64,000 bases of DNA from Lytechinus pictus. Taxonomy: Eukaryota. Shown in pieces: positions 6,871 to 49,095 of the stretch (positions within the stretch are counted from its first letter, which is position 1; each line of letters starts with the position of its first letter). The stretch is taken from positions 14,384,001 through 14,448,000 of the forward strand of contig NC_087258.1 of NCBI RefSeq assembly GCF_037042905.1, given 5' to 3'. The position numbers and the translations under genes were made by a program. The notes under the pieces are model-generated. The model saw only the letters and a program-made list of their open reading frames with translations. It searched no databases and had not been told where the DNA came from.

Positions 6871-9037
6871 ATTGTCAAGGAATGGTAACAAGTATTATTT
6901 TTTGGCTCCCCATATTTTTAACACAGAGTTAGGCCTTGGTCTAAGTTAAACCTGACTTCAGAATACGGGCCTATAAGTTCTCTAGATGAAGCTTTAATCA
7001 TGAATAGTAAGATTATCTTATACGTCCAACTAAATCTGTAATCACCTTTCAGAGATAGGATTTTATTTAATGCAGGCCTTGCCAGCGTCGGATTACAAAT
7101 AAATCGGGGAAAATACAAAGGGGTTTATATACCAAAAAGGTTGTATGAAAGAGAATCACAGGTCTCTTTTTTATCTGTTACTTTTAAGCTTTTAATCCGC
7201 TGCGCAAAAACTATTGGTCCGTAGTACGAATGGTTTTGACCAATTTGGTTCGGCGCTATACTGCTATTTTATGCTAAATTCTTACACGATGCTGCCATCT
7301 GGTTCGCCGGGGGCGATTGTGGCATATTACAATAAATACAATGCACATCTCATTACAGAATTCAATGAATACCCTTTTTTCAATTCAATTCAATTAATTT
7401 TTTTTGATGATCAAACATGTTAATAACTATGTCACTTTAAAAAAAATTGCCGGAGCTGGAAAATTCATGTTTACAAGTTTGTGTTGGCACAATGAATTAC
7501 AAGTTAAAACATATTTCGACACAATCTCAGCGGGTCAAGCTCAATACTCACAATGACCACTAGTAAAAATGATCACTAGTTTTAATGTTCATTAGTCAAA
7601 ATAAAGACCACTAGTCATAATGAACATTTGTCATAATGACCACTAGTCACAATGACCACTAGTCATGATCTCCGAGTAACTGTAGGGAAATATGAATTGG
7701 GCACCCGATCAAAATAAAATTTCATATGAAATCAAAATGGTTGTGAAAACAAACACACGCACTTTTATATATTCCACATCATGACTGTTTTCGGGCATGT
7801 ATATTCACGTAATAAAGTTACCATGTTGTCAGAATGAATTACACATAACACAAAAAACTATGACATGTAAATAAGTGACCTTTTCTGGACTTTAAGGTAC
7901 ATTATTTGAGATCTTTTCATCAGATTGACGTCAATAACCCGTTTTTTTAATACTGGATTTACGGTCACATTTGAATGAATCAGAACAAGACAACAAATAA
8001 AGTTCCTTTACCCCAAATCAATTCGTGACAAGTGAAGGTAAGAATTTTTTTAAGTCTCGATAAAGCTCCAAATGTTTTTCAAGGATTTTCCCCTCCAAGG
8101 AAAGGAAATGAAAGTTTATGAATATCAAATTCTTTGAAAAGGGAGGCACTATTAAATAGCTATATTATTGTTTTTATATCAACATATGTCCCTTATTACG
8201 CACAATTTAATTTTGTTTTAAACGTGTCAAGTACTAACTCAATGGCCTTTTTATACTAGCTTCTTTTTTATCTCTGGATCTCTCGTCATGATACTTTCAC
8301 TTTCTCTTCGTCTTCCTCCTACTCTCTATTCCTCCATTTCCGACACCCACCCGCCACGGTCACTCTAGGATCACGCGCGTAAAACATTTCCAATAGACTC
8401 GTGCGGTAAAATTACACTGTTTAAAAAATCATAAAAAATGAAGTTGAAATTAGAGGGTTGAATATTTACTACCAGTAGATATGATACATATCAGACATTC
8501 CATATCTGACCAGAATAGGTTAGCTTAGCCAGCTCATTTTTAAAATAAATCGGCATTTATGCAGACATCTCCTCACGGGATCAAATTCATCACCTGAGAC
8601 AGCAAAATAGCCCTATTCTTCCGCCAGCCCCCAAAAAGTTCCAAAATCATCAATATTTCGTCAAACTTTGGGCAAAGGAAGTTCAGTAGTTGCCCTTCCT
8701 GTAATCAGTGTTAGATGGTCAATCATATCATACTCTTGTCAATCAGCAATATCAAATTTAAACAAATTCGAATAGGTGGAGACGAATTAATATATTTTTC
8801 CTTCCTGTTGTAATTAGGCTCGTGGCACCTGTATCTCTCTCACTACCATGTACCTATCACACCCACACCAACATACACAAACACACACTCTCACCCCCAT
8901 GCCCTTTCACCATGTTCGCTATACAGAACAAACCTCAGTCTTACATTTCCAGCTAGCGAGAGATGTTTTCCTCAAACAAAATATTCCAAGCTTCCATTTC
9001 GTACATTATATATTTTTTTTTCTAAAAGTTTATTGAT

Positions 9038-9366
9038 AAATTTAAGACCAGTTGTTAGTTGCACCTGGGGGTGACATGTTTGGAGTGTGAATGTGTGTGT
9101 TTGTCGTGTGTATGCGTGCGTGTGGGTAATATTCCTGTTGTGATCTTTAAAATTCCTTGTATTTTTTTTATTCTTCTCATAGTTATTCCATGTTTGAGTA
9201 AAATATCATATGCAGGGGCACCTGATTACAAGCTGTGCTTTTTGGGGGTCCCAAACCTGTCATTTGTTTCAGTTCTTTATAATGTAACCATTTATTTTGT
9301 TTGTACTTTGTTCTCCTTTGACTGGTTTGAATACATTCAATTCAATTCAATTCAATTCAATTCAAT
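9038..9366 (+). mobile_element. 5'-truncated LINE 3' end with (TTCAA)n tail, present only in copy A
   Basis: Copy B reads TTTATTGATCATACATGG without interruption; copy A has 329 extra bases there ending in TTCAATTCAATTCAATTCAAT, a CR1/L2-type tail. Confidence 0.75.
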
Positions 9367-9653
9367 CATACATGGGTGTCACTTCAGTGTGACGTAAATG
9401 ATTCAATCTACAGGTAGGGCTGAAAGAAGCATTGTAGAACAAATAACTAAATAAAAAGGATGAATAAGAGGTGATTTGCATACTGCAAATGTAACGCATA
9501 ACGCGAATGTAACGTAAGTAAATGATTCAATACGCCATTTGTATACATTTTGGGCATCGATAACAATTATGTTCTAAACTAAGTGCTTAACATAGTACGA
9601 CAAGATACAACATCAATTTCTCGGTCGTATAACGTTGCGAAATTAGATAAAAA

Positions 9654-9927
9654 TCAGTCTAATTTTGACTTTCTACTGTTTAAGCATCGGGATGGACATC
9701 GTATACAGCATGAATAAACAAGGAAGGTGGTAACGAGAAGAATGGCGCTGATGAACGCTAAGACGTCAATGGAATTAAGTTGGATGAAGTTGAGTTGCAG
9801 TGCTCTAGATCTCAGGTGTGATCCGCCATGTTTGAGGATATGTTCAACCCAGTAGACTATAGTTTCCTCAGGGTCAGATTGGGTATCTTTGTAGATTCTT
9901 GAATATTTGATGATATTATCCCTGTAA
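9654..9927 (-). CDS. UGT last exon, distal duplicate (exon 5b), intact
   Basis: Acceptor TTTGTTTTCAG, 274 nt, encodes YRDNIIKYSRIYKDTQSDPEETIVYWVEHILKHGGSHLR..DVLAFISAILLVTTFLVY..RKSKLD*. It differs from exon 5a by G>S in the TM helix and a terminal E>D. Confidence 0.8.
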
Positions 9928-9967
9928 CTGAAAACAAATAAAGTACGGACGAATTATGGAGTACTTG

Positions 9968-10136
9968 CATTGGCGGCGGAAGCCAAAAATTTTAGGGGGG
10001 GGGGGACCTAAAAAAAAAAATTGACAAGCAAAAAAAAAAAAAAAAAAAAGGTAATCAACAAAAAATTTAGGGGGGATCGTCCCCCACCTAAAATTTAGGG
10101 GGGACACGTCCCCCCCCCCCGCTTCCGCCGCCTTTG
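9968..10136. mobile_element. hAT-like MITE
   Basis: TIRs CATTGGCGGCGGAAGC / GCTTCCGCCGCCTTTG; perfect 8-bp TSD AGTACTTG (9960-9967, 10137-10144). Confidence 0.85.
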
Positions 10137-11299
10137 AGTACTTGGCAATCTTAATAAGCAAGCGAACAAACTTGTTGTATTTTTAAAATGGAAAGATCCA
10201 CGCCTATTTTGTTTATTTATTTTTGTTTTTATTTTATATCATTTTCAGGTATACATTATACTCGTAACAATTATAGTCAAATTCATTACATTGACAATAA
10301 TCATCATACAATATCTAATATAAAATATAAGAAAAAAAAATTAAAACATTAAACAAAGGAAAGAACACCAGCTAATGCCTGGGGATAATCAAAAGAAATC
10401 AAGTTTCTGTTAAAAGACTCTCCTCATTAGCTGGTGCTAAAAAGAACACTAACACTAAAATACAGTTCAACAAAAAGCAAATAAAAATGATAGTTGAAGA
10501 CATAATAATGACATTTGAAGACATAATCGCATATGACAGAACTGAATAGAAGATAAACAGCGATGTATATAGAAAGCTGGCCACCCTGGATAAAATTGGC
10601 TAACATGTGTTAGCATGCATAGTGAAATATCAAACTGCTGCCATTAATTATCCACAAGAAATGAGACAGTGTGAGGTAAATAGTAATAATGATAATAATA
10701 GTATATTAGTAGTAATAATCATAATAATAGTAGTAGTAATAATAATAATGATAGTAGTAATGATACTATAATAGCGTTTAACACCTACTTTATTAGAGTC
10801 TCTAAGAGCTCTACAGTGATTTTTGAGAAGAAAACACGTGGACAAATGATATGCCATTGCTCGCCGTTTTAATAATTCCGTACGAGGCATCAAAACACAG
10901 AGGCAATATGCCTAAATAACATAAGAGGTGATAAACCTCAAAACAGTCTGAACAATGTCGTAAGACATAACGAAAAACTACATATGTGGCATCCTATTAA
11001 TCTTACTGAAAGATATGGTCACGTGATCGCCAGGAAGGGTAGTAACTCCTCCCTGGGACTGTTGATCACGTGACCCACCCGCACGATAGTGGTTCCCACG
11101 GGTGTTTCCCTAAATCTTGGTAAACAACATCTTTGGAGCATATACTTTGATATCAATATTGGTGATCTGTCAGGTTTCAAACAAATTGTTTCTGAACAAA
11201 AACCTTCTACACTTCTAAAGCAATGTATCCTGACATGCTCCTCCTTACCATTTACATATAAAAGTCATAATTAGCCACATAATGCTCTATGCTGCCTGT

Positions 11300-12417: not shown

Positions 12418-13320
12418 GAGATGTTTAATAAGAAAATCATAAATCGTGATACACAAAATTTCCTACACACGGTAATTCTCAACAGTAATTCAGCTCTACG
12501 CATGGACTAAGATATCAGCTTGTATGCCAGCGTCGGATTACAAATAAATCGGGGAAAATACAAAGGGGTTTATATACCAAAAAGGTTGTATGAAAGAGAA
12601 TCGCAGGTCTCTTTTTTATCTGTTACTTTTAAGCTTTTAATCCGCTGCGCAAAAACTATTGGTCCGTAGTACGAATGGTTTTGACCAATTTGGTTCGGCG
12701 CTATACTGCTATTTTATGCTAAATTCTTACACGATGCTGCCATCTGGTTCGCCGGGGGCGATTGTGGCATATTACAATAAATACAATGCACATCTCATTA
12801 CAGAATTCAATGAATACCCTTTTTTCAATTCAATTCAATTAATTTTTTTTGATGATCAAACATGTTAATAACTATGTCACTTTAAAAAAAATTGCCGGAG
12901 CTGGAAAATTCATGTTTACAAGTTTGTGTTGGCACAATGAATTACAAGTAAAAACATATTTCGACACAATCTCAGCGGGTCAAGCTCAATACTCACAATG
13001 ACCACTAGTAAAAATGATCACTAGTTTTAATGTTCATTAGTCAAAATAAAGACCACTAGTCATAATGAACATTTGTCATAATGACCACTAGTCACAATGA
13101 CCACTAGTCATGATCTCCGAGTAACTGTAGGGAAATATGAATTGGGCACCCGATCAAAATAAAATTTCATATGAAATCAAAATGGTTGTGAAAACAAACA
13201 CACGCACTTTTATATATTCCACATCATGACTGTTTTCGGGCATGTATATTCACGTAATAAAGTTACCATGTTGTCAGAATGAATTACACATAACACAAAA
13301 AACTATGACATGTAAATAAG

Positions 13321-15354
13321 GGCTTATTATAATCACTCGGGTCGCGTTCGCGTTCGAAATCACTCGGGTCGCGTTCGTAATCACTCGGGTTTTGGATTTT
13401 TGGCGATTTTTTTTATTTCGATGCGATTTGATGTCTTCAATGGGACAAACACGCTGGGAAAATGAAATGAAATTGAAATTCTAGTTTCGTGTTAAGCCGG
13501 CAAGTGCCTTAAATAAAATGCACTCGCCTACTGCTTAACATAACAAACAAGCAAATCAGCCATGTGGCTCAACTATCCTAGAATACATCCAGACTTCTAC
13601 TGTTTTTATACGAGGACTCCGAGTCGGAACTTGCCATATCTGCCACATCGATATTACATCGTCATTCCCATGTGCGGACATGCATGCCTGCATGCAATGG
13701 CCCCAAGGCGGGACCCGGCCACGGTCGGACACGGCGTGCATTGGTAGCATGGAGCAAGGTAACGTGATCTACGCCGATATTTTATATCCGATTTTCCCTT
13801 CAAGGGGCATGATCGAAGATTGGCAGGTGATCGCCGATTGTGGTAAAATCGGGAGCCGATTTAAAAATCGGTTAATTAGAACAGGTACAATTACGATTTT
13901 AAAATTAATTTAAAATCGATTTCCAAAATCAATTTTAAGATCGATCTAAGATCAATTTTAGATCAGTTTTAGTATTAGTTTTTAAAAACCCATTCACATT
14001 TTTACTGATGCTGACGAAAAGTTAGTTTGGTTGTCAGAGCATTATTTGTCCTGCGTCTAAATAACTATGTCCGATCGAGGGACCGTTTTAATTTCGGAAA
14101 GGTAGGAGAGACAGAGAGAGAGAAAGACTGATCCCCGTTCAGCTCAACGTATACGTTTGGCACGCGAGCACAAAGAAGATCAATTAAGCACATCACCTAA
14201 TGCAATGTTTCGAGAATTTAGGTAGGGAAATTTTTAAGTCTCCAGTTACTTAAAACATGATATGGCCATTTTATCTATAAAATAAGACAAATTTTATGAG
14301 AAATGGACAGTAATTAAGAGAGCAGAATTTTAAAACGCCTATCGGAAAGATCGTCCTCAAAGCTCATTACGTATTAGACAGCTGGCAGCCGTCTGTTTCG
14401 AGTTTTTTAACATTTTTATTTCTCCTCGTACACAGACGGCTCGCTATGGTGCAACCATCATTACGGGGTTAACAATGCAAAATCCCCCAGACGGCGCTCA
14501 TCGATTTTTGTCTTTATTTCATAAAAATATATGAAAAGAACTGTATTGGTGAGTGGAGCTAACGAAGTTCAGCGGAACAACGAACATTGCAGAGACCGAA
14601 GCTCTTGGTCTAAATACGTATATATGCATTAAACCACGGATGGCTGGCTATGCATACCGCTGAATTAAATACTTTTGGACGAGCTGCGGACTGACTGGCA
14701 CTGTAACGTGGGATCTAACTCGGCTCGACTCACGTTACCTTGCTCCATGCTACCGATGCACGCCGTGTCCAACCGTGGCCGGGTTCCGCCTTGGGGCCAT
14801 TGCATGCAGGCATGCATGTCCGCACATGGGAATGACGATGCAGGGGCCGCGGAAGCGGGGGGGCTGAGGGGGCTTCAGCCCCCTCCCACTTTTTTCCAAA
14901 ACCGTGTACAAAAACGTAAAAATTACCATATGATTGTGATTTTTTGCATGGTCAGTCCCCCCCCCCACTTTTGGCTCAGCCCCCCCACTTTGAAAACCGT
15001 TCCGCGGCCCCTGCGATGTCATATCGATGTGGCAGATATGGCAAGTTCCGACTCGGAGTCCTCGTATAAAAATAGTAGAAGTCTGGATGTATTCTAGGAT
15101 AGTTGAGCCACATGGCTGATTTGCTTGTTTGTTATGTTAAGCAGTAGGCAGGTGCATTTTATTTGAGGCACTTGTCAGCTTAACACGAAACTAGAATTTC
15201 AATTTCATTTCATTTTCCCAGCGTGTTTGTCCCATTGAAGACATCAAATCGCATCGAAATAAAAAAAATCGCCAAAAATCCAAAACCCGAGTGATTACGA
15301 ACGCGACCCGAGTGATTTCGAACGCGAACGCGACCCGAGTGATTATAATAAGCC
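13321..15354. mobile_element. 2034-bp non-autonomous DNA transposon with ~450-bp TIRs (Merlin- or MULE-like)
   Basis: Termini GGCTTATTATAATCACTCGGG / CCCGAGTGATTATAATAAGCC; TIRs 13321-13767 and 14730-15354; 8-bp TSD TAAATAAG (13313-13320, 15355-15362). The empty site is present in copy A at ~7868. Confidence 0.92.
14841..15013. mobile_element. MITE nested in the right TIR of the 2-kb element
   Basis: 14-bp perfect TIR CAGGGGCCGCGGAA / TTCCGCGGCCCCTG; CGATG duplicated on both sides; absent from the left TIR. Confidence 0.9.
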
Positions 15355-16794
15355 TAAATAAGTGACCTTTTCTGGACTTTAAGGTACATTATTTGAGATC
15401 TTTTCATCAGATTGACGTCAATAATCCGTTTTTTTAATACTGGATTTACGATCACATTTGAATGAATCAGAACAAGACAACAAATAAAGTTCCTTTACCC
15501 CAAATCAATTCGTGACAAGTGAAGGTAAGAATTTGTTTAAGTCTCGATAAAGCTCCAAATGTTTTTCAAGGATTTTCCCCTCCAAGGAAAGGAAATGAAA
15601 GTTTATGAATATCAAATTCTTTGAAAAGGGAGGCACTATTAAATAGCTATATTATTGTTTTTATATCAACATATGTCCCTTATTACGCACAATTTAATTT
15701 TGTTTTAAACGTGTCAAGTACTAACTCAATGGCCTTTTTATACTAGCTTCTTTTTTATCTCTGGATCTCTCGTCATGATACTTTAACTTTCTCTTCGTCT
15801 TCCTCCTACTCTCTATTCCTCCATTTCCGACACCCACCCGCCACGGTCACTCTAGGATCACGCGCGTAAAACATTTCCAATAGACTCGTGCGGTAAAATT
15901 ACACTGTTAAAAAAATCATAAAAAATGAAGTTGAAATTAGAGGGTTGAATGTTTACTACCAGTAGATATGATACATATCAGACATTCCATATCTGACCAG
16001 AATAGGTTAGCTTAGCCAGCTCATTTTTAAAATAAATCGGCATTTATGCAGACATCTCCTCACGGGATCAAATTCATCACCTGAGACAGCAAAATAGCCC
16101 TATTCTTCCGCCAGCCCCCCCAAAAGTTCCAAAATCATCAATATTTCGTCAAACTTTGGGCAAAGGAAGTTCAGTAGTTGCCCTTCCTGTAATCAGTGTT
16201 AGATGGTCAATCATATCATACTCTTGTCAATCAGCAATATCAAATTTAAACAAATTCAAATGGGTGGAGACGAATCAATAAATTTTTCCTTCCTGTTGTA
16301 ATTAGGCTCGTGGCACCTGTATCTCTCTCACTACCATGGACCTATTACACCCACACCAACATACACAAACACACACTCTCATCCTCATGCCCTTTCACCA
16401 TGTTCGCTATACAGAACAAACCTCAGTCTTACATTTCCAGCTAGCGAGAGATGTTTTCCTCAAACAAAAAATTCCAAGCTTCCATTTCGTACATGATATT
16501 TTTTTTTTCTAAAAGTTTATTGATCATACATGGGTGTCACTCCAGTGTGACGTAAATAATTCAATCTACAGGTAGAGCTGAAAGAACCGTTGTAGAACAA
16601 ATAACTAAATAAAAAAGGATGAATAAGAGGTGATTTGCATACTGCAAATGTAACGTAAGTAAATGATTCAATACGCCATTTGTATACATTTTGGGCATCG
16701 ATAACAATTATGGTCTAAACTGAGTGCTTTACAAAGTACGACAAGATACAACATCAATTTACCGGTCGTATAACGTTGCGAAATTAGATAAAAA

Positions 16795-17068
16795 TCATTC
16801 TAATTTTGACTTTCTACTGTTTAAGCATCGGGATGGACATCGTATACAGCATGAATAAACAAGGAAGGTGGTAACGAGAAGGATGGCGCCGATGAACGCT
16901 AAGACGTCAATGGAATTAAGTTGGATGAAGTTGAGTTGCAGTGCTCTAGATCTCAGGTGTGATCCGCCATGTTTGAGGATATGTTCAACCCAGTAGACTA
17001 TAGTTTCCTCAGGGTCAGATTGGGTATCTTTGTAGATTCTTGAATATTTGATGATATTATCCCTGTAA
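16795..17068 (-). CDS. UGT: UGT last exon, proximal (exon 5a): TM helix and ER-retrieval tail
   Basis: Acceptor TTTGTTTTCAG, phase 2 matches exon 4; ..VYWVEHILKHGGSHLRSRALQLNFIQLNSIDVLAFIGAILLVTTFLVYSCCIRCPSRCLNSRKSKLE*; AATAAA on the minus strand at 16516-16521. Confidence 0.93.
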
Positions 17069-17108
17069 CTGAAAACAAATAAAGTACGGACGAATTATGG
17101 AGTACTTG

Positions 17109-17270
17109 CATTGGCGGCGGAAGCCAAAAATTTTAGGGGGGGACCTCAAAAAAAAAATTGACAAGCAAAAAAAAAAAAAAAAAGGTAATCAACAAAAAAT
17201 TTAGGGGGGATCGTCCCCCACCTAAAATTTAGGGGGGACACGTCCCCCCCCCCCGCTTCCGCCGCCTTTG
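17109..17270. mobile_element. hAT-like MITE (duplicate of 9968-10136)
   Basis: Same TIRs and AGTACTTG TSD (17101-17108, 17271-17278). Confidence 0.85.
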
Positions 17271-17874
17271 AGTACTTGGCAATCTTAATAAGCAAGCGAA
17301 CAAACTTGTTGTATTTTTAAAATGGAAAGATCCACGCCTATTTTGTTTATTTATTTTTGTTTTTATTTTATTTCATTTTCAGGTATACATTATACTCGTA
17401 ACAATTAAAGTCAAATTCATTACATTGACAATAATCATCATACAATATCTAATATACAATATAAGAAAACAAATTAAAACATTAAAAAAAGGAAAGAATA
17501 CCAGCTAATGCCTGGGGATTATCAAAAGAAAGTTTCTGTTAAAAGACTCTCCTCATTAGCTGGTGCTAAAAAAGAACACTAACACTTAAATACAGTTCAA
17601 CAAATAACAAATACAAATGATAGTTGAAGACATAATAATGACATTGAAGACATAATAATGACATTTGAAGACATAATCGCCTATGACAGAACTTAATAGA
17701 AGATAAACAGCGATGTGTATAGAAAGCTGGCCACCCTGGATAAAATTGGCAGACATGGCTTAAATTCTTTCGAAATTGAGTAGAGAGGTAAGATTTTCAA
17801 TCATCAGTGAGTGAGGATGTGTTAGCATGCATAGTGAAATATCAACCTGCTGCCATTAATTCTCCACAAGAATG

Positions 17875-18176
17875 NNNNNNNNNNNNNNNNNNNNNNNNNN
17901 NNNNNNNNNNNNNNNNNNNNNNNNNNNNNNNNNNNNNNNNNNNNNNNNNNNNNNNNNNNNNNNNNNNNNNNNNNNNNNNNNNNNNNNNNNNNNNNNNNNN
18001 NNNNNNNNNNNNNNNNNNNNNNNNNNNNNNNNNNTAACACCTACTTTATTAGAGTCTCTATGAGCTCTACAGTGATTTTTTTGTGTGCGGCATATTTACC
18101 CTGGTTTTAGCAGAATACCTACCAAGTACAGATTCCCCTCACCTGGGTTGAGTGTAGCACAATGTGGATAAACTTC
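17875..18176 (-). mobile_element. Degenerate SINE 3' half with simple-repeat tail (tail N-masked)
   Basis: The reverse complement TTATCCACATTGTGCTACACTCAACCCAGGTGAGG resembles the core of the SINE at 21041; the (TAT/TAC)n tail is visible in copy A at 10680-10770. Confidence 0.6.
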
Positions 18177-18254
18177 AACTAAACGACATAAGGTAATTTC
18201 ATTAGTTATTTTTTTATTTGAACAAATTATTGCTATTGGTGTTGGTCCTCTTAC

Positions 18255-18474
18255 CTTTGATTTACCAGGACATCCGTGATCACTTCCCTCACGTTCTCGT
18301 CGGTAGCGTAGAATCTGTTGAGAATCCTTCCAATTCCCTTAGTCTTGACCTTGACAGCATTGGACGCTTGATCAAATATCACTGGCATGACGACCAGTGG
18401 TACAGCATGGTATATAGCTTCTAGAATGCCTCGCAAACCGCCATGATATATCATCAATCTTGCTTTAGGGTGAC
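18255..18474 (-). CDS. UGT: UGT common exon 4 (UDP-sugar-binding signature)
   Basis: TGACAG acceptor, AG/GTAAGA donor, 220 nt; GHPKARLMIYHGGLRGILEAIYHAVPLVVMPVIFDQASNAVKVKTKGIGRIL. Confidence 0.95.
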
Positions 18475-18691
18475 CTGTCATTAAACATAGCAAACATTTA
18501 CATATATTAAAAAAAATAACATCCCCTCATCAAATTCATGGGAGAGTATTATTAAGCAAAGAGTGATTTGTCACTGATAAGTTTGCTCTGAAAATGAAAA
18601 TATATTGACATCCTATAACAATATAGCTATATGAAAACACTGAAATTTTCTTTAATATGATACCCTCCCCGGTTAGGCGTTGAGTTGCGTC

Positions 18692-18883
18692 CAGTGGCGG
18701 ATCCGGGGGGGGGGGCACATCCGGTCCGTGCCCCCCCCCCCCCTCTTTTGAGAGACATAGTCAATATTTTTAATGTAAACATGTCGTTCATATACACAAG
18801 TGATGACCTTTGGTTTTTTTTGTAATTTTTTTTCTAGAAAAAATGTGCCCCCCTTTAAAAAAAAAATCCTGGATTCGCCCCTG
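18692..18883. mobile_element. hAT-like MITE in UGT intron 3
   Basis: TIRs CAGTGGCGGATCC / GGATTCGCCCCTG; 8-bp TSD GTTGCGTC / GTTGCATC. Confidence 0.8.
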
Positions 18884-20100
18884 GTTGCATCTAATGTTTC
18901 ATTTCTGTTTATATCCAACACGAATTATATACTGGGTTTATGCGTATTCAGATAAATAGTTTTCTATTTGAAAAGTGCATTATGATTTTAGCCATACACG
19001 ACCCCAAAGAGTAAGGAAGGAAGCAGGAACTACATATTGCATTATAATTATTGCTTTCTTCGCCGTGAGTGTGGGAGGAAGAGGGGGGGGGGGGTGATCA
19101 TCACATCTATGTTTTTTCCTCAAGTTTGGGTAAATCATCTAGACACATTTTTAGCGGTTCCGTTACATTTTTTTCGGCGACAATGGTTCCGCTGGAAAAC
19201 CTGTATGCTAAGCTAAACATGGGCCTGAAACTTAACCTCCAATTCTAAATCCCAATACTTATCTTAGCATAAATCTAAAACCAAATACTTTATCACAATC
19301 CTAACTCTAACCCTATGCCCTCTGAAATATTAAGACAGGAGCAAAGTTCGCACGAGAAAAATATCGTGTCACTGTTTTGAGCAGTATTGTGTATGGTGTG
19401 TTGGCGTATTCTTCAATAGGGGCAACAGAAAAAAATTATTTTTTTTAATGATAAAGTCGAACGTTTCGGTAGCACAATGAGTTAAAAAAAGTTGAGGGCC
19501 TGGGGCAACATAAGTCGTCTGGGGCAAAATTTATCGATCAACCAAAATGTTGACCTTTTGAATACACAAATCCAATTCTGTGATAGATTTCGACATAATA
19601 TTCAGAAAATAGAATAATATATTACCCCATTTTCATTTCATTTTCACCCCCTTTCTCCCTATATTCCGGGGTTGAGATAGATTTGGGGTCCATGTCACCC
19701 CCACCTCCTTGCGCCCCCATCTGTACCAGTGTTGTCAGGTCCAAACTGAAGAAAATCCCCTAAAGGCACTAAAAAATCCCCCAAATTGAATTCCAAATCC
19801 CCAAATTTTTCAAATCACAATTTCTTTCGTTGCCAACTAACTAGTTCGCTGAGGTACAATCTCTGTGTTAACTATATCTACAGTAGATCGTATATTATTA
19901 GCGTTATCGCCGGATGCGTCGGACGTTATATAACTGAAAAATAACACTTTTTTTTTTGCTTTTCAACAAAACCTTCCAAAATCCCCTAAAATAGACAAAA
20001 AAACCAAAAATTTAGTTTGATTCCCAAATATTTTTTCATCCCCAAATGCTTCTGGAAATCCCAATTTGTTTAATGGCAATGCCAATATCGAGCAGCTTAC

Positions 20101-20263
20101 CAAGTATGTCGTTCTGGGGTATCCAGTCTACGATCAACGTGTTATTGCCAAGGTGACGGGGGCGTGGCCCAATATACCGCCAGATCACTCTCTGTGGAAG
20201 CTCACTGAAGACTCTGGCGAAGACCTCTGCCATATGTAATGGCACCCGCGTAAAATAAGAGCC
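20101..20263 (-). CDS. UGT: UGT common exon 3
   Basis: Acceptor CTTCTCTCGTACATCAG, donor GTAAGC, 163 nt; GSYFTRVPLHMAEVFARVFSELPQRVIWRYIGPRPRHLGNNTLIVDWIPQNDIL(G). Confidence 0.95.
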
Positions 20264-20345
20264 CTGATGTACGAGAGAAGATACAAACTTTAACTGAAGG
20301 ATAGTCTATTAAGGAAGGCCTCCATGGTTATTCGTATCTATAGAA

Positions 20346-20564: not shown

Positions 20565-21040
20565 TAGCGGTTAAGGTGAGATTTTTAATGAAAAAAGGTA
20601 ACCCTTTTAATATGATCGAACATATCATGTGCACTTAAAATGATGATAATGAAATATAAACCTGTGTATATTAGGTAGATTATGGGGGAGGGATCTCTGT
20701 ATCAAATTTAAATTATGATATATATTCACTTTTCAGTGGTTTATAATTAGTTAGGCATTATTGTTGCTGTTTTTATGTAAATCGAATGGCAAATGAGAAA
20801 TATGGAATAAATGAAATGAAAAAGAACACAAATAATATTCATGAAGAAATGCATACAACTGTTTCACTGAAATAATGCAAAATTTTCTTTTATAGAATGC
20901 CATGTCTTTGTTATCCCTTCTCCGATTTTGAAGAAATGTTCAGTGTTTTGATGTCTGATTTTACTTTTATTTGTTCCAAACATTATTTTCACCCAGGAGT
21001 ACCCCAATAATTTGAATGTATCAAGATTTGACTGTCATGT

Positions 21041-21375
21041 GGGTGCGTCGTGGTCTAGTGGTTCTGACTCTCGCCTTTCAAACACAGGGTCGTGGGTTCG
21101 AATCCTAGCCATGGCGTGTTTTCCTTCAGCAAGAAATTTATCAGCACTGTGCTGCACTCGACCCAGGTGAGGTAAATGGGTACCGGCATGAAGTAATTCC
21201 TCAAAAAGCTGTGCGCACCAGAATCGGTAGACTAGCATAGCCGGGGTAATAAAGGAGCGCCTTGAACACCTAGCAAGGTGGATACGTGCGCTATACAAAT
21301 CCTATATTATTATTATTATTATCATTTTTATTATTATTATCATTATTATTATTGTTATTATTATTATCATTATAA
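21041..21375 (+). mobile_element. tRNA-derived SINE with L2-like 3' end and (TAT)n tail
   Basis: A box TGGTCTAGTGG, B box GGTTCGAATCC, core GCACTCGACCCAGGTGAGGTAAATGGGTACC, end GCGCTATACAAAT plus (TAT)n. Confidence 0.88.
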
Positions 21376-21571: not shown

Positions 21572-22103
21572 AATTCTTCTTCTCCCTCTTCTTCTCCTTT
21601 TTCTTCTTGAAGTTGTTGTTGTTCATCTTCNNNNNNNNNNNNNNNNNNNNNNNNNNNNNNNNNNNNNNNNNNNNNNNNNNNNNNNNNNNNNNNNNNNNNN
21701 NNNNNNNNNNNNNNNNNNNNNNNNNNNNNNNNNNNNNNNNNNNNNNNNNNNNNNNNNNNNNNNNNNNNNNNNNNNNNNNNNNNNNNNNNNNNNNNNNNNN
21801 NNNNNNNNNNNNNNNNNNNNNNNNNNNNNNNNNNNNNNNNNNNNNNNNNNNNNNNNNNNNNNNNNNNNNNNNNNNNNNNNNNNNNNNNCTTCTTCTTTTT
21901 CTTATTTCCTTCTTCNNNNNNNNNNNNNNNNNNNNNNNNNNNNNNNNNNNNNNNNNNNNNNNNNNNNNNNNNNNNNNNNNNNNNNNNNNNNNNNNNNNNN
22001 NNNNNNNNNNNNNNNNNNNNNNNNNNNNNNNNNNNNNNNNNNNNNNNNNNNNNNNNNNNNNNNNNNNNNNNNNNNNNNNNNNNNNNNNNNNNNNNNNNNN
22101 NNN
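21572..22103. repeat. (CTT)n low-complexity tract, largely N
   Basis: CTT-rich flanks around N runs 21631-21888 and 21916-22103. Confidence 0.7.
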
Positions 22104-22417
22104 TCCGTCACTTTGTATTCGGCTCCCTCAGCGCTTCGCGCAAATCTACAAATGAAATTGTTAATTCACAAGAATTCTGTATGTATTATTATCATTTCGA
22201 TTTGAAAATATCAATGTCGAGTCCGATACTGCATTAGGAATATGTAGGGCCTGGAGTGTAAAATTCTTGATAGATCACAATCGATATAGGTTTGAATTCT
22301 AGTCATATCAATTTGGAAAACTTTCATCCACACTTGCATTTGCTCCACCCACACGTGTACAGGAAAGAAAGTATGGGTATAGCCATAAGCTATAGATATA
22401 ATCATCATGTAGTTTAC

Positions 22418-23269
22418 CTTGTCTAACGGTCTTGCTGGGACACCGACCGTATTTCCGATAGCTACCCAGTTGGGTGCTGTTGGGTGAGGGAAATCAAAGG
22501 CAAAGCTCGTCATGCACATCCACAACTCTGCATCTCCTACGAGCTCTTGGGTGCTTCGTCCTGGAGCAATACCATGCGCGTCCTTTATCTCGTCTAAAGC
22601 TCCGAAGTGAACCCACCCTAAAAATCTCGACACAAGGTTATGGTCCATGAAGCTGGCAACCCGCTCCAGAAACGTCATCTGATCTGATAAGGGGAGTGAA
22701 TATTGTACGTACGATGAAGGCGCTGGAATCCCGTAGAGGCGTTCGTGAAAAAGAAAATATCTCGTTGTCGTCGTCACAGCTATGTGCGGTATACCTAGGT
22801 AACTACTGAGGATCGCATCACATCCGTCAACGACATCCCCGATCAGGATATCAAAATGTGATTCCTTCAGCCGAAACAGAACAGCGGAGTCCTCAAGGAG
22901 ACTTTGGCAAGCTAACCTTATCCAAGAGTACAGTTTCCCTATATCTATCATATTACTTAACGGACCCTTCTGAAAGAAATCCTCTATCATGGTGTCCAGG
23001 GTGCCCTCGTATCCTGAAGGAACATCGAAGCGGTAGTGGAGGGCGGTGTTGTAGGTGTCCCTCGGGAAGCCTTCTGTTCCTACAAATGAGCAGGTCAGGA
23101 TGGTGACGTTGTGGCCGCGACTGCTCAATGCTCCTGTTATAGCGGACATGCTTTTAGGATGACTGGTGTATTCTGGAACTAAGACAGTAACAAGGATATT
23201 TGCAGCATTGGTCAAAGAGGTGAATGCTATAGTCAGTAACGTGAACTTGGTGAATGTTACGAGTTTCAT
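22418..23269 (-). CDS. UGT: UGT variable exon 1, copy 1 (most proximal)
   Basis: ATG, signal peptide MKLV..TNA, 284 codons ending PARPLDK, donor AAG/GTAAAC in phase 0; R70 N74 G218. Confidence 0.93.
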
Positions 23270-23370
23270 CTTGCCCGTAGCGATTCCTTGTAGATTTCAA
23301 TTGTATATTATGAGTGGCATTCTTTAAATCATGCCAATCCACCGAACATGCCGAACAGATTGTCATCAAA

Positions 23371-23377
23371 TGAGTCA
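23371..23377. promoter_or_regulatory. AP-1 consensus ~100 bp upstream of the exon-1 ATG, present in every unit
   Basis: TGAGTCA is kept even in the diverged upstream flank of copy 10; a 7-mer match only. Confidence 0.25.
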
Positions 23378-23700
23378 CAGTAAAGCTCTACAGATCACTC
23401 ATTCATGTCATTATTCACTCCTTTTTTGGTTTGCAAACGTTTCCGCTGAGCCATATACATGTAGATATGCTTCAGCACCCCCGATTCCCAGGGCCATTAT
23501 GTGGAAGAGCTGTATTCACATCATATTTCTCATGCGCATGTTTTGCAAGAAAACATCTTGTTGATTGGATCGTAGACCTCTTGGTCTACGAGTAGATGGT
23601 CTAATTCTCAGGGTTAGGATTTCTTTTAACCTCCTTTTTAGTCCTTAAATATACTTTGTTATTCTGATCCGCCTTCACTCCCTTCAGTGTATGAAAAGAA

Positions 23701-24546
23701 AACAGAGGAACAGCTACAGCTGAACTATCTACAAAATCTATTTATCATGCATTGAAACGCTGATTGAACAGTTATTATTCATCATTTCCTTCATTCTGGC
23801 ATGAAAATGGAATTATCTCAAGTAGCAAGAAAATAAACTGGACAGAAATATATGCCCCACCAAAGATAAAAAAGGGCGGAGACACACAATATAAGCTACT
23901 CCACAATGTTTGCCATCTTTACCAGTTCTTCACCATTTTAACAAGGACATTCCGATACAGTTCAGATGGTGCTTTGAGACTGGGACCATCATCCATCTAT
24001 TCATACAGTGCCCGGCCATCCAGTAATCCCTCAACGTTTTACATCGTCTGATTCACCGACTCATTCCGAACATTAATATCGACTTCGATTTATACTGGGC
24101 ACTGGTTCCTCATGCTTCGGGCCGCTGCAAGGAAGCCGTGCGTTTATGTAACTTTTTGTTAATTAGTTTCAAAAGTACCATTTATTGGCTGTATCGTACT
24201 TTGAATCTTTCAGATCCCCTATTGGTTTGGAAATTCAAATTGAAAAGCATGAATTTTCTTGATTATGAGTTTTTTAAGTTACAAAATAACGATACTGCCT
24301 TCTCAAAGCGATGGTTCGTGAACAATGCCCTTTGTTCTGTCGGCACTTCTTTTGAGTTAGTTTGGTCATTTTGAATGTAGGAATGTAGGCCTACTGTTAC
24401 TTTACTGGTTGTTAAACGTTATTTCTTGGTTTGTTTTTAATGAGTCCTTATTTGTACTTACGAAGTATATTATTCTGATATTTTATTTGTATATATGTTA
24501 TAGTTTGCTTGTAAATAAAGTTTCATTTTGAAAAGTAAAAAAAAAA
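23701..24546 (+). mobile_element. Tx1-clade LINE 3' fragment with polyA, one per array junction (also from ~26310, 28883, 31453, 34024, 36595, 39166, 41740, 44348)
   Basis: Frameshifted ORF2 C-terminus WTEIYAPPKIKKGGDTQYKLLHNV/LPSLPVLHHF..WCFETGTIIHLFIQCP..FSKRWxVxNALCSV, then a T-rich UTR, AATAAA and an A-run joined to (CTT)n. Confidence 0.8.
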
Positions 24547-25029
24547 GTCTTCTTCTTCTTCTTCCTCTTCTTCTTCATGTTCTTCTTCATATCTTCTTCT
24601 TCTTCGTCGTCTTCTTCTTCTTCCTCTTCTTTTTCTTCTTAACGTTTTCTACTTTTTCGTCTTCTCCTTCCTTTCTTTTTCATTCTTCTTCTTCTTCCTA
24701 TATTTCATCTTTCTCTGTCACTTTGTATTCGGCTCCCTCAGCGCTTCGCGCAAGTCAAAAAATGAAATTGTTAATTCACGAGAATTCTGTATGTATTATT
24801 ATCATTTCGATTTCAGAATATCAATGTCGAGTCCGATACTGCATTAGGAATGTGTAGGGCCTGGAGTGTAAAATTCTTGATGGATCACAATAATCATATA
24901 GGTTTGAACTCTAGTCATATCAATTTGGAAAACTTTCATCCACACTTGCATTTGCTCCACCCACACGTGTACAGGAAAGAAAGTATGGGTATAGCCATAA
25001 GCTATGTATATACTCATCATGTAGTTTAC

Positions 25030-25881
25030 CTTGTCTAACGGTCTTGCTGGGACACCGACCGTATTTCCGATAGCTACCCAGTTGGGTGCTGTTGGGTGAG
25101 GGAAATCAAAGGCAAAGCTCGTCATGCACATCCACAACTCTGCATCTCCTACGAGCTCTTGGGTGCTTCGTCCTGGAGCAATACCATGCGCGTCCTTTAT
25201 CTCGTCTAAAGCTCCGAAGTGAACCCACTCTAAAAATCTCGACACAAGGTTATGGTCCATGAAGCTGGCAACCCGCTCCAGAAACGTCATCTGATCTGAT
25301 AAGGGGAGTGAATATTGTACGTACGATGAAGGCGCTGGAATCCCGTAGAGGCGTTCGTGAAAAAGAAAATATCTCGTTGTCGTCGTCACAGCTATGTGCG
25401 GTATACCTAGGTAACTACTGAGGATCGCATCACATCCGTCAACGACATCCCCGATCAGGATATCAAAATGTGATTCCTTCAGCCGAAACAGAACAGCGGA
25501 GTCCTCAAGGAGACTTTGGCAAGCTAACCTTATCCAAGAGTACAGTTTCCCTATATCTATCATATTACTTAACGGACCCTTCTGAAAGAAATCCTCTATC
25601 ATGGTGTCCAGGGTGCCCTCGTATCCTGAAGGAACATCGAAGCGGTAGTGGAGGGCGGTGCTGTAGGTGTCCATCGGGAAGCCTTCTGTTCCTACAAATG
25701 AGCAGGTCAGGATGGTGACGTTGTGGCCGCGACTGCTCAATGCTCCTGTTATAGCGGACATGCTTTTAGGATGACTGGTGTATTCTGGAACTAAGACAGT
25801 AACAAGGATATTTGCAGCATTGGTCAAAGAGGTGAATGCTATAGTCAGTAACGTGAACTTGGTGAATGTTACGAGTTTCAT
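25030..25881 (-). CDS. UGT: UGT variable exon 1, copy 2
   Basis: Intact 852 nt, same donor; M70 S74 E218. Confidence 0.88.
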
Positions 25882-27602
25882 CTTGCCCGTAGCGATTCCT
25901 TGTAGATTTCAATTGTATATTATGAGTGGCATTCTTTAAATCATGCCAATCCACCGAACATGCCGAACAGATTGTCATCAAATGAGTCACAGTAAAGCTC
26001 TACAGATCACTCATTCATGTCATTATTCACTCCTTTTTTGGTTTGCAAACGTTTCCGCTGAGCCATATACATGTAGATATGCTTCAGCACCCCCGATTCC
26101 CAGGGCCATGATGTGGAAGAGCTGTAATCACATCATATTTCTCATGTGCATGTTTTGCAAGAAAACATCTTGTTGATTGGATCGTAGACCTCTTGGTCTA
26201 CGAGTAGATGGTCTAATTCTCAGGGTTAGGATTTCTTTTAACCTCCTTTTTAGTCCTTAAATATACTTTATTCTGATCCGCCTTCACTCCCTTCAGTGTA
26301 TGAAAAGAAAACAGAGGAACAGCTACATCTGAACTATCTACAAAATCTATTTATCATGCATTGAAACGCTGATTGAACAGTTATTATTCATCATTTCCTT
26401 CATTCTGGCATGAAAATGGAATTATCTCAAGTAGCAAGAAAATAAACTGGACAGAAATATATGCCCCACCAAAGATAAAAAAGGGCGGAGACACACAATA
26501 TAAGCTACTCCACAATGTTTGCCATCTTTACCAGTTCTTCACCATTTTAACAAGGACATTCCGATACAGTTCAGATGGTGCTTTGAGACTGGGACCATCA
26601 TCCATCTATTCATAGTGTGCCCGGCCATCCAGTACTCCCTCAACGTTTTACATCGTCTGATTCACCGACTCATTCCGAACATTAATATCGACTTCGATTT
26701 ATACTGTGGGCACTGGTTCCTCATGCTTCGGGCCGCTGCAAGGAAGCCGTGCGTTTATGTAACTTTTTGTTAATTAGTTTCAAAAGTACCATTTATTGGC
26801 TGTATCGTACTTTGAATCTTTCAGATCCCCTATTGGTTTGGAAATCCAAATTGAAAAGTAGGAATTTTCTTGTTTATGAGTTTTTTAAGTTACAAAATAA
26901 CGATACTGCCTTCTCAAAGCGATGGTGCGTGAAAAATGCCCTTTGTTCTGTCGGCACCTCTTTGAGTTAGTTTGGTCATTTTGAATGTATGAATGTAGGC
27001 CTACTGTAACTTTACTGGTTGTTTGACGTTATTTCTTGGTTTGTTTTTAATGAGTCCTTATTTGTACTTACGAAGTATATTATTCTGATATTTTATTTGA
27101 ATATATGTTATAGTTTGCTTGTAAATAAAGTTTCATTTTGAAAAGTCAAAAAAAGTCTTCTTCTTCTTCTTCCTCTTCTTCTTCTTCATATTTTCTTCTT
27201 CGTCTTCTTCTTGCTCTTCTTCTTATCTTTTTCTTCTTTGTCGTCTTCTTCTTCTTTTCTTTTTCATTCTTCTTCTTCCTATATTTTCATCTTTCTCTGT
27301 CACTTTCTATTCGGCTCCCTCAGCGCTTCGCGCAAATCTAAAAATGAAATTGTTAAGTCACGAGAATGTATTATTATCATTTCGATTTCAGAATATCAAT
27401 GTCGAGTCCGATACTGCATTAGGAATGTGTAGGGCCTGGAGTGTAAAATTCTTGATAGATCACAATCGATATAGGTTTGAATTCTAGTCATATCAATTTG
27501 GAAAACTTTCATCCACACTTGCATTTGCTCCACCCACACGTGTACAGGAAAGAAAGTATGGGTATAGCCATAAGCTATAGATATAATCATCATGTAGTTT
27601 AC

Positions 27603-30172: not shown

Positions 30173-31024
30173 CTTGTCTAACGGTCTTTCTGGGACACCG
30201 ACCGTATTTCCGATAGCTACCCAGTTGGGTGCTGTTGGGTGAGGGAAATCAAAGGCAAAGCTCGTCATGCACATCCACAACTCTGCATCTCCTACGAGCT
30301 CTTGGGTGCTTCGTCCTGGAGCAATACCATGCGCGTCCTTTATCTCGTCTAAAGCTCCGAAGTGAACCCACCCTAAAAATCTCGACACAAGGTTATGGTC
30401 CATGAAGCTGGCAACCCGCTCCAGAAACGTCATCTGATCTGATAAGGGGAGTGAATATTGTACGTACGATGAAGGCGCTGGAATCCCGTAGAGGCGTTCG
30501 TGAAAAAGAAAATATCTCGTTGTCGTCGTCACAGCTATGTGCGGTATACCTAGGTAACTACTGAGGATCGCATCACATCCGTCAGCGACATCCCCGATCA
30601 GGATATCAAAATGTGATTCCTTCAGCCGAAACAGAACAGCGGAGTCCTCAAGGAGACTTTGGCAAGCTTACCTTATCCAAGAGTACATTTTCCCTATATC
30701 TATCATATTACTTAACGGACCCTTCTGAAAGAAATCCTCTATCATGGAGTCCAGGGTGGCCTCGTGTCCTGAAGGAACATCGAAGCGGTACTGGAGGGCG
30801 GTGTTGTAGGTGTCCATCGGGAAGCCTTTTGTTCCTACAAATGAGCAGGTCAGGATGGTGACGTTGTAGCCGCGACTGCTCAATGCTCCTGTTATAGCGG
30901 ACATGCTTTTAGGATGACTGGTGTATTCTGGAACTAAGACAGTAACAAGGATATTTGCAGCATTGGTCAAAGAGGTGAATGCTATAGTCAGTAACGTGAA
31001 CTTGGTGAATGTTACGAGTTTCAT
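30173..31024 (-). pseudogene. UGT: UGT variable exon 1, copy 4, pseudo-exon (L119*)
   Basis: TTA>TAA at 30668-30670; otherwise carries the copy-10 variant block plus Y53 and E279. Confidence 0.88.
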
Positions 31025-43067: not shown

Positions 43068-43919
43068 CTTGTCTAACGGTCTTGCTGGGACACCGACCGT
43101 ATTTCCGATAGCTACCCAGTTGGGTGCTGTTGGGTGAGGGAAATCAAAGGCAAAGCTCGTCATGCACATCCACAACTCTGCATCTCCTACGAGCTCTTGG
43201 GTGCTTCGTCCTGGAGCAATACCATGCGCGTCCTTTATCTCGTCTAAAGCTCCGAAGTGAACCCACTCTAAAAATCTCGACACAAGGTTATGGTCCATGA
43301 AGCTGGCAACCCGCTCCAGAAACGTCATCTGATCTGATAAGGGGAGTGAATATTGTACGTACGATGAAGGCGCTGGAATCCCGTAGAGGCGTTCGTGAAA
43401 AAGAAAATATCTCGTTGTCGTCGTCACAGCTATGTGCGGTATACCTAGGTAACTACTGAGGATCGCATCACATCCGTCAACGACATCCCCGATCAGGATA
43501 TCAAAATGTGATTCCTTCAGCCGAAACAGAACAGCGGAGTCCTCAAGGAGACTTTGGCAAGCTAACCTTATCCAAGAGTACAGTTTCCCTATATCTATCA
43601 TATTACTTAACGGACCCTTCTGAAAGAAATCCTCTATCATGGTGTCCAGGGTGCCCTCGTATCCTGAAGGAACATCGAAGCGGTAGTGGAGGGCGGTGCT
43701 GTAGGTGTCCATCGGGAAGCCTTTTGTTCCTACAAATGAGCAGGTCAGGATGGTGACGTTGTGGCCGCGACTGCTCAATGCTCCTGTTATAGCGGACAAG
43801 CTTTTAGGATGACTGGTGTATTCTGGAACTAAGACAGTAACAAGGATATTTGCAGCATTGGTCAAAGAGGTGAATGCTATAGTCAGTAACGTGAACTTGG
43901 TGAATGTTACGAGTTTCAT
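43068..43919 (-). CDS. UGT: UGT variable exon 1, copy 9
   Basis: Intact 852 nt; L41 K66 M70 S74 E218. Confidence 0.88.
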
Positions 43920-45638
43920 CTTGCCCGTAGCGATTCCTTGTAGATTTCAATTGTATATTATGAGTGGCATTCTTTAAATCATGCCAATCCACCGAACATG
44001 CCGAACAGATTGTCATCAAATGAGTCACAGTAAAGCTCTACAGATCACTCATTCATGTCATTATTCACTCCTTTTTTGGTTTGCAAACGTTTCCGCTGAG
44101 CCATATACATGTAGATATGCTTCAGCACCCCCGATTCCCAGGGCCATGATGTGGAAGAGCTGTAATCACATCATATTTCTCATGTGCATGTTTTGCAAGA
44201 AAACATCTTGTTGATTGGATCGTAGACCTCTTGGTCTACGAGTAGATGGTCTAATTCTCAGGGTTAGGATTTCTTTTAACCTCCTATTTAGTCCTTAAAT
44301 ATACTTTATTCTGATCCGCCTTCACTCCCTTCAGTGTATGAAAAGAAAACAGAGGAACAGCTACATCTGAACTATCTACAAAATCTATTTATCATGCATT
44401 GAAACGCTGATTGAACAGTTATTATTCATCATTTCCTTCATTCTGGCATGAAAATGGAATTATCTCAAGTAGCAAGAAAATAAACTGGACAGAAATATAT
44501 GCCCCACCAAAGATAAAAAAGGGCGGAGATACACAATATAAGTTACTCTACAATGTTTGCCATCTTTACCAGTTCTTCACCATTTTAACAAGGACATTCC
44601 GATACAGTTCAGATGGTGCTTTGAGACTGGGACCATCATCCATCTATTCATACAGTGCCCGGCCATCCAGTACTCCCTCAACGTTTTACATCGTCTGATT
44701 CACCGACTCATTCCGAACATTAATATCGACTTCGATTTATACTGGGCACTGGTTCCTCATGCTTCGGGCCGCTGCAAGGAAGCCGTGCGTTTATGTAACT
44801 TTTTGTTAATTAGTTTCAAAAGTACCATTTATTGGCTGTATCGTACTTTGAATCTTTCAGATCCCCTATTGGTTTGGAAATCCAAATTGAAAAGTAGGAA
44901 TTTTCTTGTTTATGAGTTTTTTAAGTTACAAAATAACGATACTGCCTTCTCAAAGCGATGGTGCGTGAAAAATGCCCTTTGTTCTGTCGGCACCTCTTTG
45001 AGTTAGTTTGGTCATTTTGAATGTATGAATGTAGGCCTACTGTAACTTTACTGGTTGTTTGACGTTATTTCTTGGTTTGTTTTTAATGAGTCCTTATTTG
45101 TACTTACGAAGTATATTATTCTGATATTTTATTTGAATATATGTTATAGTTTGCTTGTAAATAAAGTTTCATTTTGAAAAGTCAAAAAAAGTCTTCTTCT
45201 TCTTCTTCCTCTTCTTCTTCTTCATATTTTCTTCTTCGTCTTCTTCTTGCTCTTCTTCTTATCTTTTTCTTCTTTGTCGTCTTCTTCTTCTTTTCTTTTT
45301 CATTCTTCTTCTTCCTATATTTTCATCTTTCTCTGTCACTTTGTATTCGGCTCCCTCAGCGCTTCGCGCAAATCTAAAAATGAAATTGTTAAGTCACGAG
45401 AATGTATTATTATCATTTCGATTTCAGAATATCAATGTCGAGTCCGATACTGCATTAGGAATGTGTAGGGCCTGGAGTGTAAAATTCTTGATAGATCACA
45501 ATCGATATAGGTTTGAATTCTAGTCATATCAATTTGGAAAACTTTCATCCACACTTGCATTTGCTCCACCCACACGTGTACAGGAAAGAAAGTATGGGTA
45601 TAGCCATAAGCTATAGATATAATCATCATGTAGTTTAC

Positions 45639-49064: not shown

Positions 49065-49095
49065 TGCACGCAGCAACCCCAGAAAACTCTTGGGG

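Follow-up and report, generated by a model that had tools for sequence, protein, structure and literature searches.

How does a tandem array begin, before it holds any repeated sequence for recombination to work on? Tandem gene and exon arrays are usually credited to unequal crossing-over, and the initial duplication that creates the necessary homology is rarely explained. The question is raised in an accessible form by a UDP-glycosyltransferase (UGT) gene on the minus strand of a 64-kb stretch of the genome of the sea urchin Lytechinus pictus (hereafter the window), in which exon 1 is present ten times between positions 22104 and 49366. Between successive copies lies a fragment of a long interspersed nuclear element (LINE), and the first joint of the array appears to be preserved in every unit, with the target motif of the LINE family on one side and the end of a truncated cDNA on the other. 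The most economical reading, to which we assign a probability of roughly 0.55, is that a single LINE-mediated event made the founding duplication.

Unit boundaries were set by BLAST of one unit against the window together with anchor searches. Nine full units (u1 to u9), each of 2571-2621 bp and 98.3-99.96% identical to one another, span 22104-45165; the left part of a tenth copy follows at 45166-46676 and closes the tandem array (22104-46676, plus strand). Read on the plus strand, a unit consists of an A-run and GT, a CTT-rich tract (~155-182 bp), the first ~310 nt of intron 1, exon 1, a proximal upstream region (Uprox, 186 bp), a distal upstream region (Udist, 235 bp), the dinucleotide AC and a ~835-bp LINE fragment. 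This agrees with the order (CTT)n, intron start, exon 1, upstream sequence, 5′-truncated LINE, (CTT)n given in a first-pass annotation of the same DNA. The ~430 bp of upstream sequence in that description is right in length (429 bp), but it is a composite of Uprox and Udist joined by a deletion scar rather than a single stretch.

In unit 1, the 5′ end of intron 1, with its conserved donor AAG|GTAAAC, occupies 22104-22417, exon 1 22418-23269, Uprox 23270-23456 and Udist 23464-23701, all on the minus strand; Udist ends ...GTATGAAAAGAAA and is joined to Uprox by the scar left by loss of a segment called M here. On the plus strand there follow the two-base filler AC of the 5′ joint (23702-23703), the LINE fragment (23704-24548; degenerate open reading frame 2 (ORF2) from ~codon 1078, 3′ untranslated region, A-run and GT) and, directly 3′ of the LINE end, a CTT-rich tract (24549-24718) of the kind that is the canonical target of the family. 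The intron piece of unit 2 begins at 24719, and this second copy of the repeated stretch X (24719-26310, minus strand; intron piece, exon 1 at 25030-25881, Uprox and Udist) completes an X-LINE-X structure. The right end of the array is built differently. The intron piece, exon 1 (ATG at 46490) and Uprox of copy 10 (45337-46676, minus strand) are followed by segment M (46677-49095, 2419 bp, largely repeat-derived) and then by an outer Udist (49096-49366, minus strand), which ends ...GGAAAGAAA and gives way to a unique flank, R, without a LINE. What had been recorded as an outer homologue at 49366 does lack a LINE after it, as described, but it is copy 10's own Udist on the far side of the 2.4-kb M and not a separate homologue.

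There are nine LINE fragments, each of them between two copies, with starts at 23704, 26313, 28886, 31456, 34027, 36598, 39169, 41743 and 44351. BLASTN and TBLASTN with a full-length element found no further piece of it in the 64-kb window, where the left edge of the array is partly masked; the earlier view that the Tx1 piece lies between copies only is thus upheld at 9/9 joints. At the right edge, unit homology ends at 49366 (...GTATGGAAAGAAA|TCCCGACCC) and unique R begins; neither a LINE nor a CTT tract follows the outer copy at that position, and the Udist of copy 10 simply continues into R. At the left edge, copy 1 is separated from unique intron by ~527 bp of CTT-rich, partly masked DNA (21577-22103, with N at 21631-21888 and 21916-22103), where the internal tracts measure ~155-182 bp. 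No LINE is visible there, as had also been noted before, and the N runs of 258 and 188 bases are each shorter than the whole fragment.

Direct repeats flank both LINE ends (Udist|LINE and A(n)GT|CTT-intron) in 9/9 junctions. They are arranged as in a target-site duplication (TSD), with the left copy stopping at the point where the outer copy continues into R and the right copy starting at the target motif. The 3′ joint, A(n)GT|CTT, is the canonical joint of the family. The 5′ joint abuts unique DNA, which is atypical for the family: the duplicated stretch (X′, that is, X together with M) ends ...GAAAGAAA, followed by AC and then by AGAGG of the element, whose own preceding bases are ...CTGGTG, and the AC filler matches neither the element (..GGTG) nor, fully, flank R (TC..). 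Because all nine joints are identical, AC filler included, they can be traced to one event. The distal break lies directly 3′ of GAAAGAAA / GGAAAGAAA on the plus (purine) strand; among background positions, a (GA2-3)x2 motif precedes only 0.12% and a 9-nt purine run 0.8%. Recognized post hoc, the break thus falls at an endonuclease-like site and would fit a top-strand nick made by the endonuclease of the element.

The LINE family itself could be defined from a whole-assembly search with the array fragment, which returned nine longer genomic copies that are 86-87% identical to it; compared with the living family, the identity of the array fragment is 86-88%. Homology between these copies and the array ends sharply at 26313 (equivalent to position 7413 of locus L032, which holds a full copy), and the copies themselves extend further upstream, so the array piece is truly 5′-truncated, beginning at ORF2 codon ~1078 of a ~5.8-kb element. 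The L032 element encodes an ORF1 of 524 aa with a CCHC knuckle and an ORF2 of 1300 aa that matches Exo_endo_phos and RVT_1, i.e., an apurinic/apyrimidinic endonuclease (APE) and a reverse transcriptase (RT). A fish 'transposon TX1 149 kDa protein' (573 bits, with 32% identity over 1180 aa), the best named hit, aligns with its ORF2 from one end to the other, while human L1 ORF2p scores 232 bits; on this best named match, the family may be termed Tx1-like. Its choice of target is evident from the flanks. Full-length copies have CTT on both sides in 7/7 cases, with 5′ ends that read (CTT)n|AACGTGGAGGG, and all 3′ ends in the family read ...GAAAAGT(C)A(n)GT|CTTCTT, identical to those in the array. 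Among short 5′-truncated copies, the 5′ flank is CTT-rich in 4/6; the 5′ flank of the copy at L065 is T/C-rich, and that at L060, a short truncated copy at a short CTT motif, has a 19-bp TSD. The family is specific for (TTC)n tracts, which it enters in one orientation, as does Koshi. From the 3′ joints and the L060 TSD, its endonuclease can be deduced to cut the purine strand 3′ of GAA-type runs; the GAA strand of CTT tracts is where it normally nicks and where reverse transcription is primed. At the L032 locus (G000:C12:10726000-10735999), two copies of the family that are 98-99% identical lie head to tail in one CTT tract, and one of them has both ORF1 and ORF2 open; the family therefore looks recently active.

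How much DNA was originally duplicated depends on the history of segment M. A dispersed paralogue elsewhere in the assembly (G000:C4:23096000-23125999, loci L052-L054; exon 1 at reverse-complement 16182-17235), called the C4 paralogue here, runs colinear with copy 10 from exon 1 across Uprox and M to Udist, and spans both M boundaries. Its exon 1, 95% identical, is an orphan: the frame shifts near codon 192, and none of exons 2-4 lies within 30 kb. It carries neither CTT nor LINE, and its homology stops ~135 nt inside X′ on the left and ~67 nt inside on the right, short of both boundaries, making it a dispersed copy of nearly the exact unit that was later tandemly duplicated. In Uprox/Udist, C4 is 83-86% identical to copy 10 and 80-83% identical to the units; copy 10 and the units, at 89-92%, are closer to each other, and C4 is therefore the outgroup. 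The 82% BLAST identity of the outer Udist is largely a gap effect, with 33-36 gap columns scored as non-identical; across aligned bases it is ~92%. Since M is common to the C4 paralogue and copy 10, it is ancestral, and the original duplicated stretch would therefore have been ~4.2 kb, not 1.8 kb. The alternative that the 2.4-kb segment of copy 10 is a late insertion is ruled out by the colinearity of C4 over both boundaries. Units 1-9 lack M and share in its place a scar, ccata + catgtag + atatgc, with short filler; they appear to descend from one copy that lost M by deletion. High-copy repeats are found at 46700-48000, 48700-49299 and 21038-21340, with word depths of 10^3-10^6 in whole-genome contig sets, which indicates that most of M, and Udist up to 49299, is transposon-derived. 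The stretch at 46731-47925 has inverted ends with G/C homopolymers, and that at 21038-21340 has dozens of copies at 92-97% identity.

The age of the duplication can be approached through contigs of two organisms, coded A and B, identified in a run search in which whole-genome contig sets of organism A shared 5-13% of words and small runs of organism B 26-35%. Contigs of both, those of A being short, were aligned to window positions 43900-49899. A 2116-nt contig of organism B runs through exon 1, the upstream region, the LINE and the A-run with 5 differences in 1282 bases; it bears the unit structure, M-deletion scar included, and comes from a separate run set. Organism A differs by ~2-4% in exon 1 and by 6-11% in the LINE and flanks, and we infer that it is a congener of L. 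pictus. One of its contigs (698 nt, depth 56) aligns to 49068-49299, comprising the last 28 nt of M and the repeat-derived part of Udist, and then, after 12 unaligned letters, to 44348-44641 in the LINE fragment; as this alignment starts three bases ahead of AGAGG, the AC filler seems to be shared. Another (868 nt, depth 33) aligns to 48983-49428 and 49556-49825, passing from Udist into R without a LINE. Organism A thus holds both joints of X′-LINE-X′, from which it follows that the bridged duplication predates the split between L. pictus and organism A. In its LINE-linked copy the end of M is retained, so that loss of M and the unit-type upstream region must date from after that split. The divergence of the upstream region between units and copy 10 (8-11%) overlaps with that of the LINE fragment from other genomic copies (8-14%), so the two are of similar age.

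Taken together, these observations would be accounted for by one aberrant retrotransposition of the (TTC)n-specific, Tx1-like LINE, producing X′-LINE-X′. A bottom-strand nick at the CTT tract in UGT intron 1 would prime reverse transcription, and the 5′-truncated cDNA would be joined not, as usual, ~19 bp away, but ~4.2 kb downstream, to a 3′ end of the top strand immediately after GAAAGAAA. This end could have been made by a second nick far off on the same duplex, giving a giant TSD, or by a sister-chromatid break bridged by the cDNA; the sequence fits both alike. Fill-in would then duplicate X′, i.e., the CTT tract, intron 5′ end, exon 1, Uprox, M and Udist, before the split from the related organism. 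In the L. pictus lineage, the left copy would lose M by a 2.4-kb end-joining deletion, and unequal crossing-over and gene conversion would amplify and homogenize the M-less unit to nine copies, each necessarily with its LINE fragment, leaving the ancestral upstream region in edge copy 10. Such a mechanism, deduced from structure, is plausible, since human cells and tumours provide documented cases of kilobase TSDs and of tandem duplications bridged by L1. The giant-TSD origin proposed in the first-pass annotation thus fits the (TTC)n-specific family, the canonical 3′ joint, the atypical 5′ flank, the break at GAAAGAAA and the joints in organism A, but the duplicated stretch is a different one, ~4.2 kb long and inclusive of M. 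A more specific version, in which a Tx1-type LINE nicked cognate-like purine-rich motifs on opposite strands and so gave a ~4.2-kb germline TSD, duplicated the promoter and first exon before two Lytechinus lineages split and directly seeded the array, is tentative and in our view falls a little short of even odds.

Several points weigh against a LINE-mediated origin. Kilobase TSDs are rare in repair-proficient cells. The left edge of the array is partly masked, and a LINE remnant of up to 258 bp could lie there. The 5′ joint was thought to be a place to look for microhomology to a full-length element, and comparison with such an element gave none, just the 2-nt filler. A patch of homeology (14-21 nt, located 12-30 nt upstream of the 5′ joint) reaches a score that 1-4% of shuffles or genomic 45-mers also attain; it is not robust, the anchored banded test giving p = 0.004-0.17 according to how the filler is treated, and it was not counted. 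The argument from GAAAGAAA was made after the fact, and the motif is (GAAA)2, not (GAA)n. In organism A, the distance from the end of the Udist repeat to the LINE is 12 nt, compared with 65 nt in L. pictus (window 49299/44348), a difference that could reflect a secondary deletion or a slightly different joint. Finally, the order of events has to be inferred. Neither of the findings named in the first-pass annotation as counter-evidence turned up: the window, partly masked at the left edge, holds no LINE piece elsewhere, and no empty-site allele or single-copy orthologue was recovered, organism A, the one relative examined, already having the LINE-bridged duplication. An alternative haplotig or second locus was sought with the L and R flanks, which returned just the window itself and dispersed repeats, and in the protein-collection search for exon-1 orthologues the cluster held L. 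pictus sequences only.

The explanation that competes best, though still an unlikely one, is that the duplication came first. A tandem duplication somewhat larger than X′ would have been followed by insertion of the LINE into the CTT tract of the right copy, with a 5′ target deletion that removed the left part of that tract along with the original joint, and later units would have inherited the LINE from this two-copy stage. The resulting end structure is the same as under a LINE-mediated event. LINE-linked target deletions are moreover commoner than duplications in tumours and cultured cells (PMC7058536, PMC11702581), and an endonuclease-like top-strand nick at GAAAGAAA suits a deletion equally well. 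Such a history, however, requires two independent rare events at one spot and a first joint that is both unexplained and traceless: a LINE-free joint is found in 0/9 of the L. pictus joints, and none is found in organism A, within the limited view that its contigs afford.

It is more doubtful still that the LINE was there before the duplication. A longer or full-length element would have occupied the intronic CTT tract to the left of exon 1, and a non-homologous tandem duplication would have followed, with breakpoints inside the LINE (at ORF2 codon ~1078) and at Udist|R; recombination between CTT tracts would then have removed the leftmost LINE. Members of the family normally lie between two CTT tracts, which could recombine in this way, the left-edge tract is unusually long (~527 bp), and a 2-nt filler without microhomology suits end-joining. 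Against these points, three events are needed, the GAAAGAAA motif at the distal break becomes a coincidence of ~0.1-1%, and no LINE is visible at the left edge.

Homologous exchange, either by unequal crossing-over between CTT tracts or by a Bar-like exchange between LINEs at the ends of X′, has very little probability, good recombination substrates though CTT tracts and LINE copies are. An exchange between CTT tracts predicts a LINE and CTT after the last copy, but the outer copy enters R directly in both L. pictus and organism A, and a Bar-like exchange needs a second CTT-specific insertion at Udist|R, a site without a CTT target. Derivation of the CTT tract from LINE 3′ read-through is ruled out by the long LINE-free CTT tract that precedes copy 1, and a chimeric retrocopy, made by an RT switch from LINE RNA to an antisense UGT transcript, is unlikely, as such a copy must start in the same CTT tract and the homologous cDNA would more probably have been resolved without duplication.

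Later amplification by unequal exchange is supported by the high similarity of the units, by a higher-order pattern among them and by a mosaic unit. Units 1 and 8 are 99.6% identical, units 2 and 9 99.55%, and units 6 and 7 99.96%, and both unit 1 and unit 8 retain ancestral states (GTT in Udist and CAGCTACAGCTG in the LINE) that the other units have lost; this pattern points to duplication of a whole block or to an exchange offset by seven units. Exon 1 of unit 4 has seven amino-acid variants in common with that of edge copy 10, indicating that unit 4 is a conversion or crossover mosaic. The identity of copy 10 to the units falls from 99.7% in the intron piece and 98.8% in the exon to 89-92% in Uprox/Udist (89% in Uprox), a gradient that is expected if crossing-over homogenizes just the inner part of an edge copy.

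Comparable structures have been described in human cells. TSDs of more than 1 kb are frequent among L1 insertions in human cells deficient in nucleotide excision repair, while TSDs of more than 100 bp make up <10% of events in HeLa cells (PMC5223499). It was pointed out that such TSDs can duplicate exons and would then be prone to recombination (Servant et al. 2017, PMC5223499). Both they and the UGT array have the order TSD, 5′-truncated LINE, poly(A), TSD. Those insertions combine a canonical first nick with a far second nick, extend over >1 kb and can include exons; they arose de novo from an engineered L1 in repair-deficient human cells, whereas the UGT array is fixed in the germline of a sea urchin, involves a microsatellite-specific Tx1-like element and was amplified to an array. 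In tumours, L1 inserts have been found at the joints of direct tandem duplications, with a model in which the cDNA invades the 3′ overhang of a downstream break on the sister chromatid (PMC7058536 Fig. 7b), and L1-bridged tandem duplications also occur in L1-expressing cells (PMC11702581 Fig. 5). As at the UGT locus, a short insert sits exactly at the direct-duplication joint and an endonuclease motif is present at the 3′ breakpoint (PMC7058536, PMC11702581). Those duplications arose in somatic cells and measure 64 kb to 22.6 Mb, while that of the UGT gene is ~4.2 kb, heritable and older than a species split, and, unlike them, affects a promoter and first exon.

The element likewise has a counterpart. 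Koshi is a (TTC)n-specific Tx1-clade LINE of pufferfishes with relatives in crocodilians, and its Tx1-clade relatives target (TTC)n, (TC)n, (TTCC)n or (TTTC)n microsatellites (PMC3812793, PMC4494074). Koshi and the family described here are both APE- and RT-encoding LINEs that lie in one orientation in (TTC)n tracts, and a Tx1-named protein is the best named relative of the latter; one is from pufferfishes and the other from an echinoderm. What is known already is the class of mechanism, from somatic and experimental systems, and the existence of (TTC)n-specific Tx1-clade LINEs. The novelty would lie in an echinoderm case that is fixed in the germline, older than speciation and the seed of a first-exon array.

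If the LINE-mediated origin is correct, a process otherwise known from cancer genomes and engineered L1 assays alone has, in the UGT locus, a heritable example at the species level, and microsatellite-specific LINEs would be tied to the way in which alternative-first-exon clusters arose in a family of detoxification genes. The same reading gives clear predictions for related urchin genomes. In its more specific version, with nicks on opposite strands, the duplication would in addition be a natural and fixed equivalent of kilobase TSDs, which until now have been seen in repair-deficient cells and in tumours only, and it would suggest that exon and gene arrays recurrently arise from site-specific LINEs at intronic microsatellites.

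Members of the exact-sequence cluster carry L. pictus RefSeq names, in line with the origin of the window. In the UGT gene to which the array belongs, exon 1 is 852 nt long (284 codons; Pfam UDPGT, E=1.5e-29), and the ten minus-strand ATGs are at 23269, 25881, 28454, 31024, 33595, 36166, 38737, 41308, 43919 and 46490. The splice donor is conserved in 10/10 cassettes and the exon-1 ORF is open in 9/10; exon 1 of unit 4 (30173-31024) is the sole copy with a premature stop, at codon 119. Downstream on the minus strand lie the constant exon 2 (20266-20099) and exon 3 (18475-18242), together occupying 18242-20266, and two copies of exon 4 (17070-16798 and 9929-9657). Among the ten cassettes, only the first is joined to exons 2-4 in an NCBI model (XP_063965567.1). 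The arrangement resembles vertebrate UGT1A, with several promoter and exon-1 cassettes with conserved donors upstream of shared exons 2-4; in contrast to UGT1A, the cassettes here are not diversified but near-identical, with 0-11 amino-acid differences, and splicing of cassettes 2-10 is putative. The two copies of the last exon, at 9657-9929 and 16798-17070, are 97.8% and 100% identical to the NCBI model, respectively, and both lie inside a larger duplicated block (7080-10824 and 12525-18080). Near the left end of the window, another non-LTR retrotransposon occupies 707-3508 on the minus strand; its ORF2 is 28% identical to that of the CTT-specific family.

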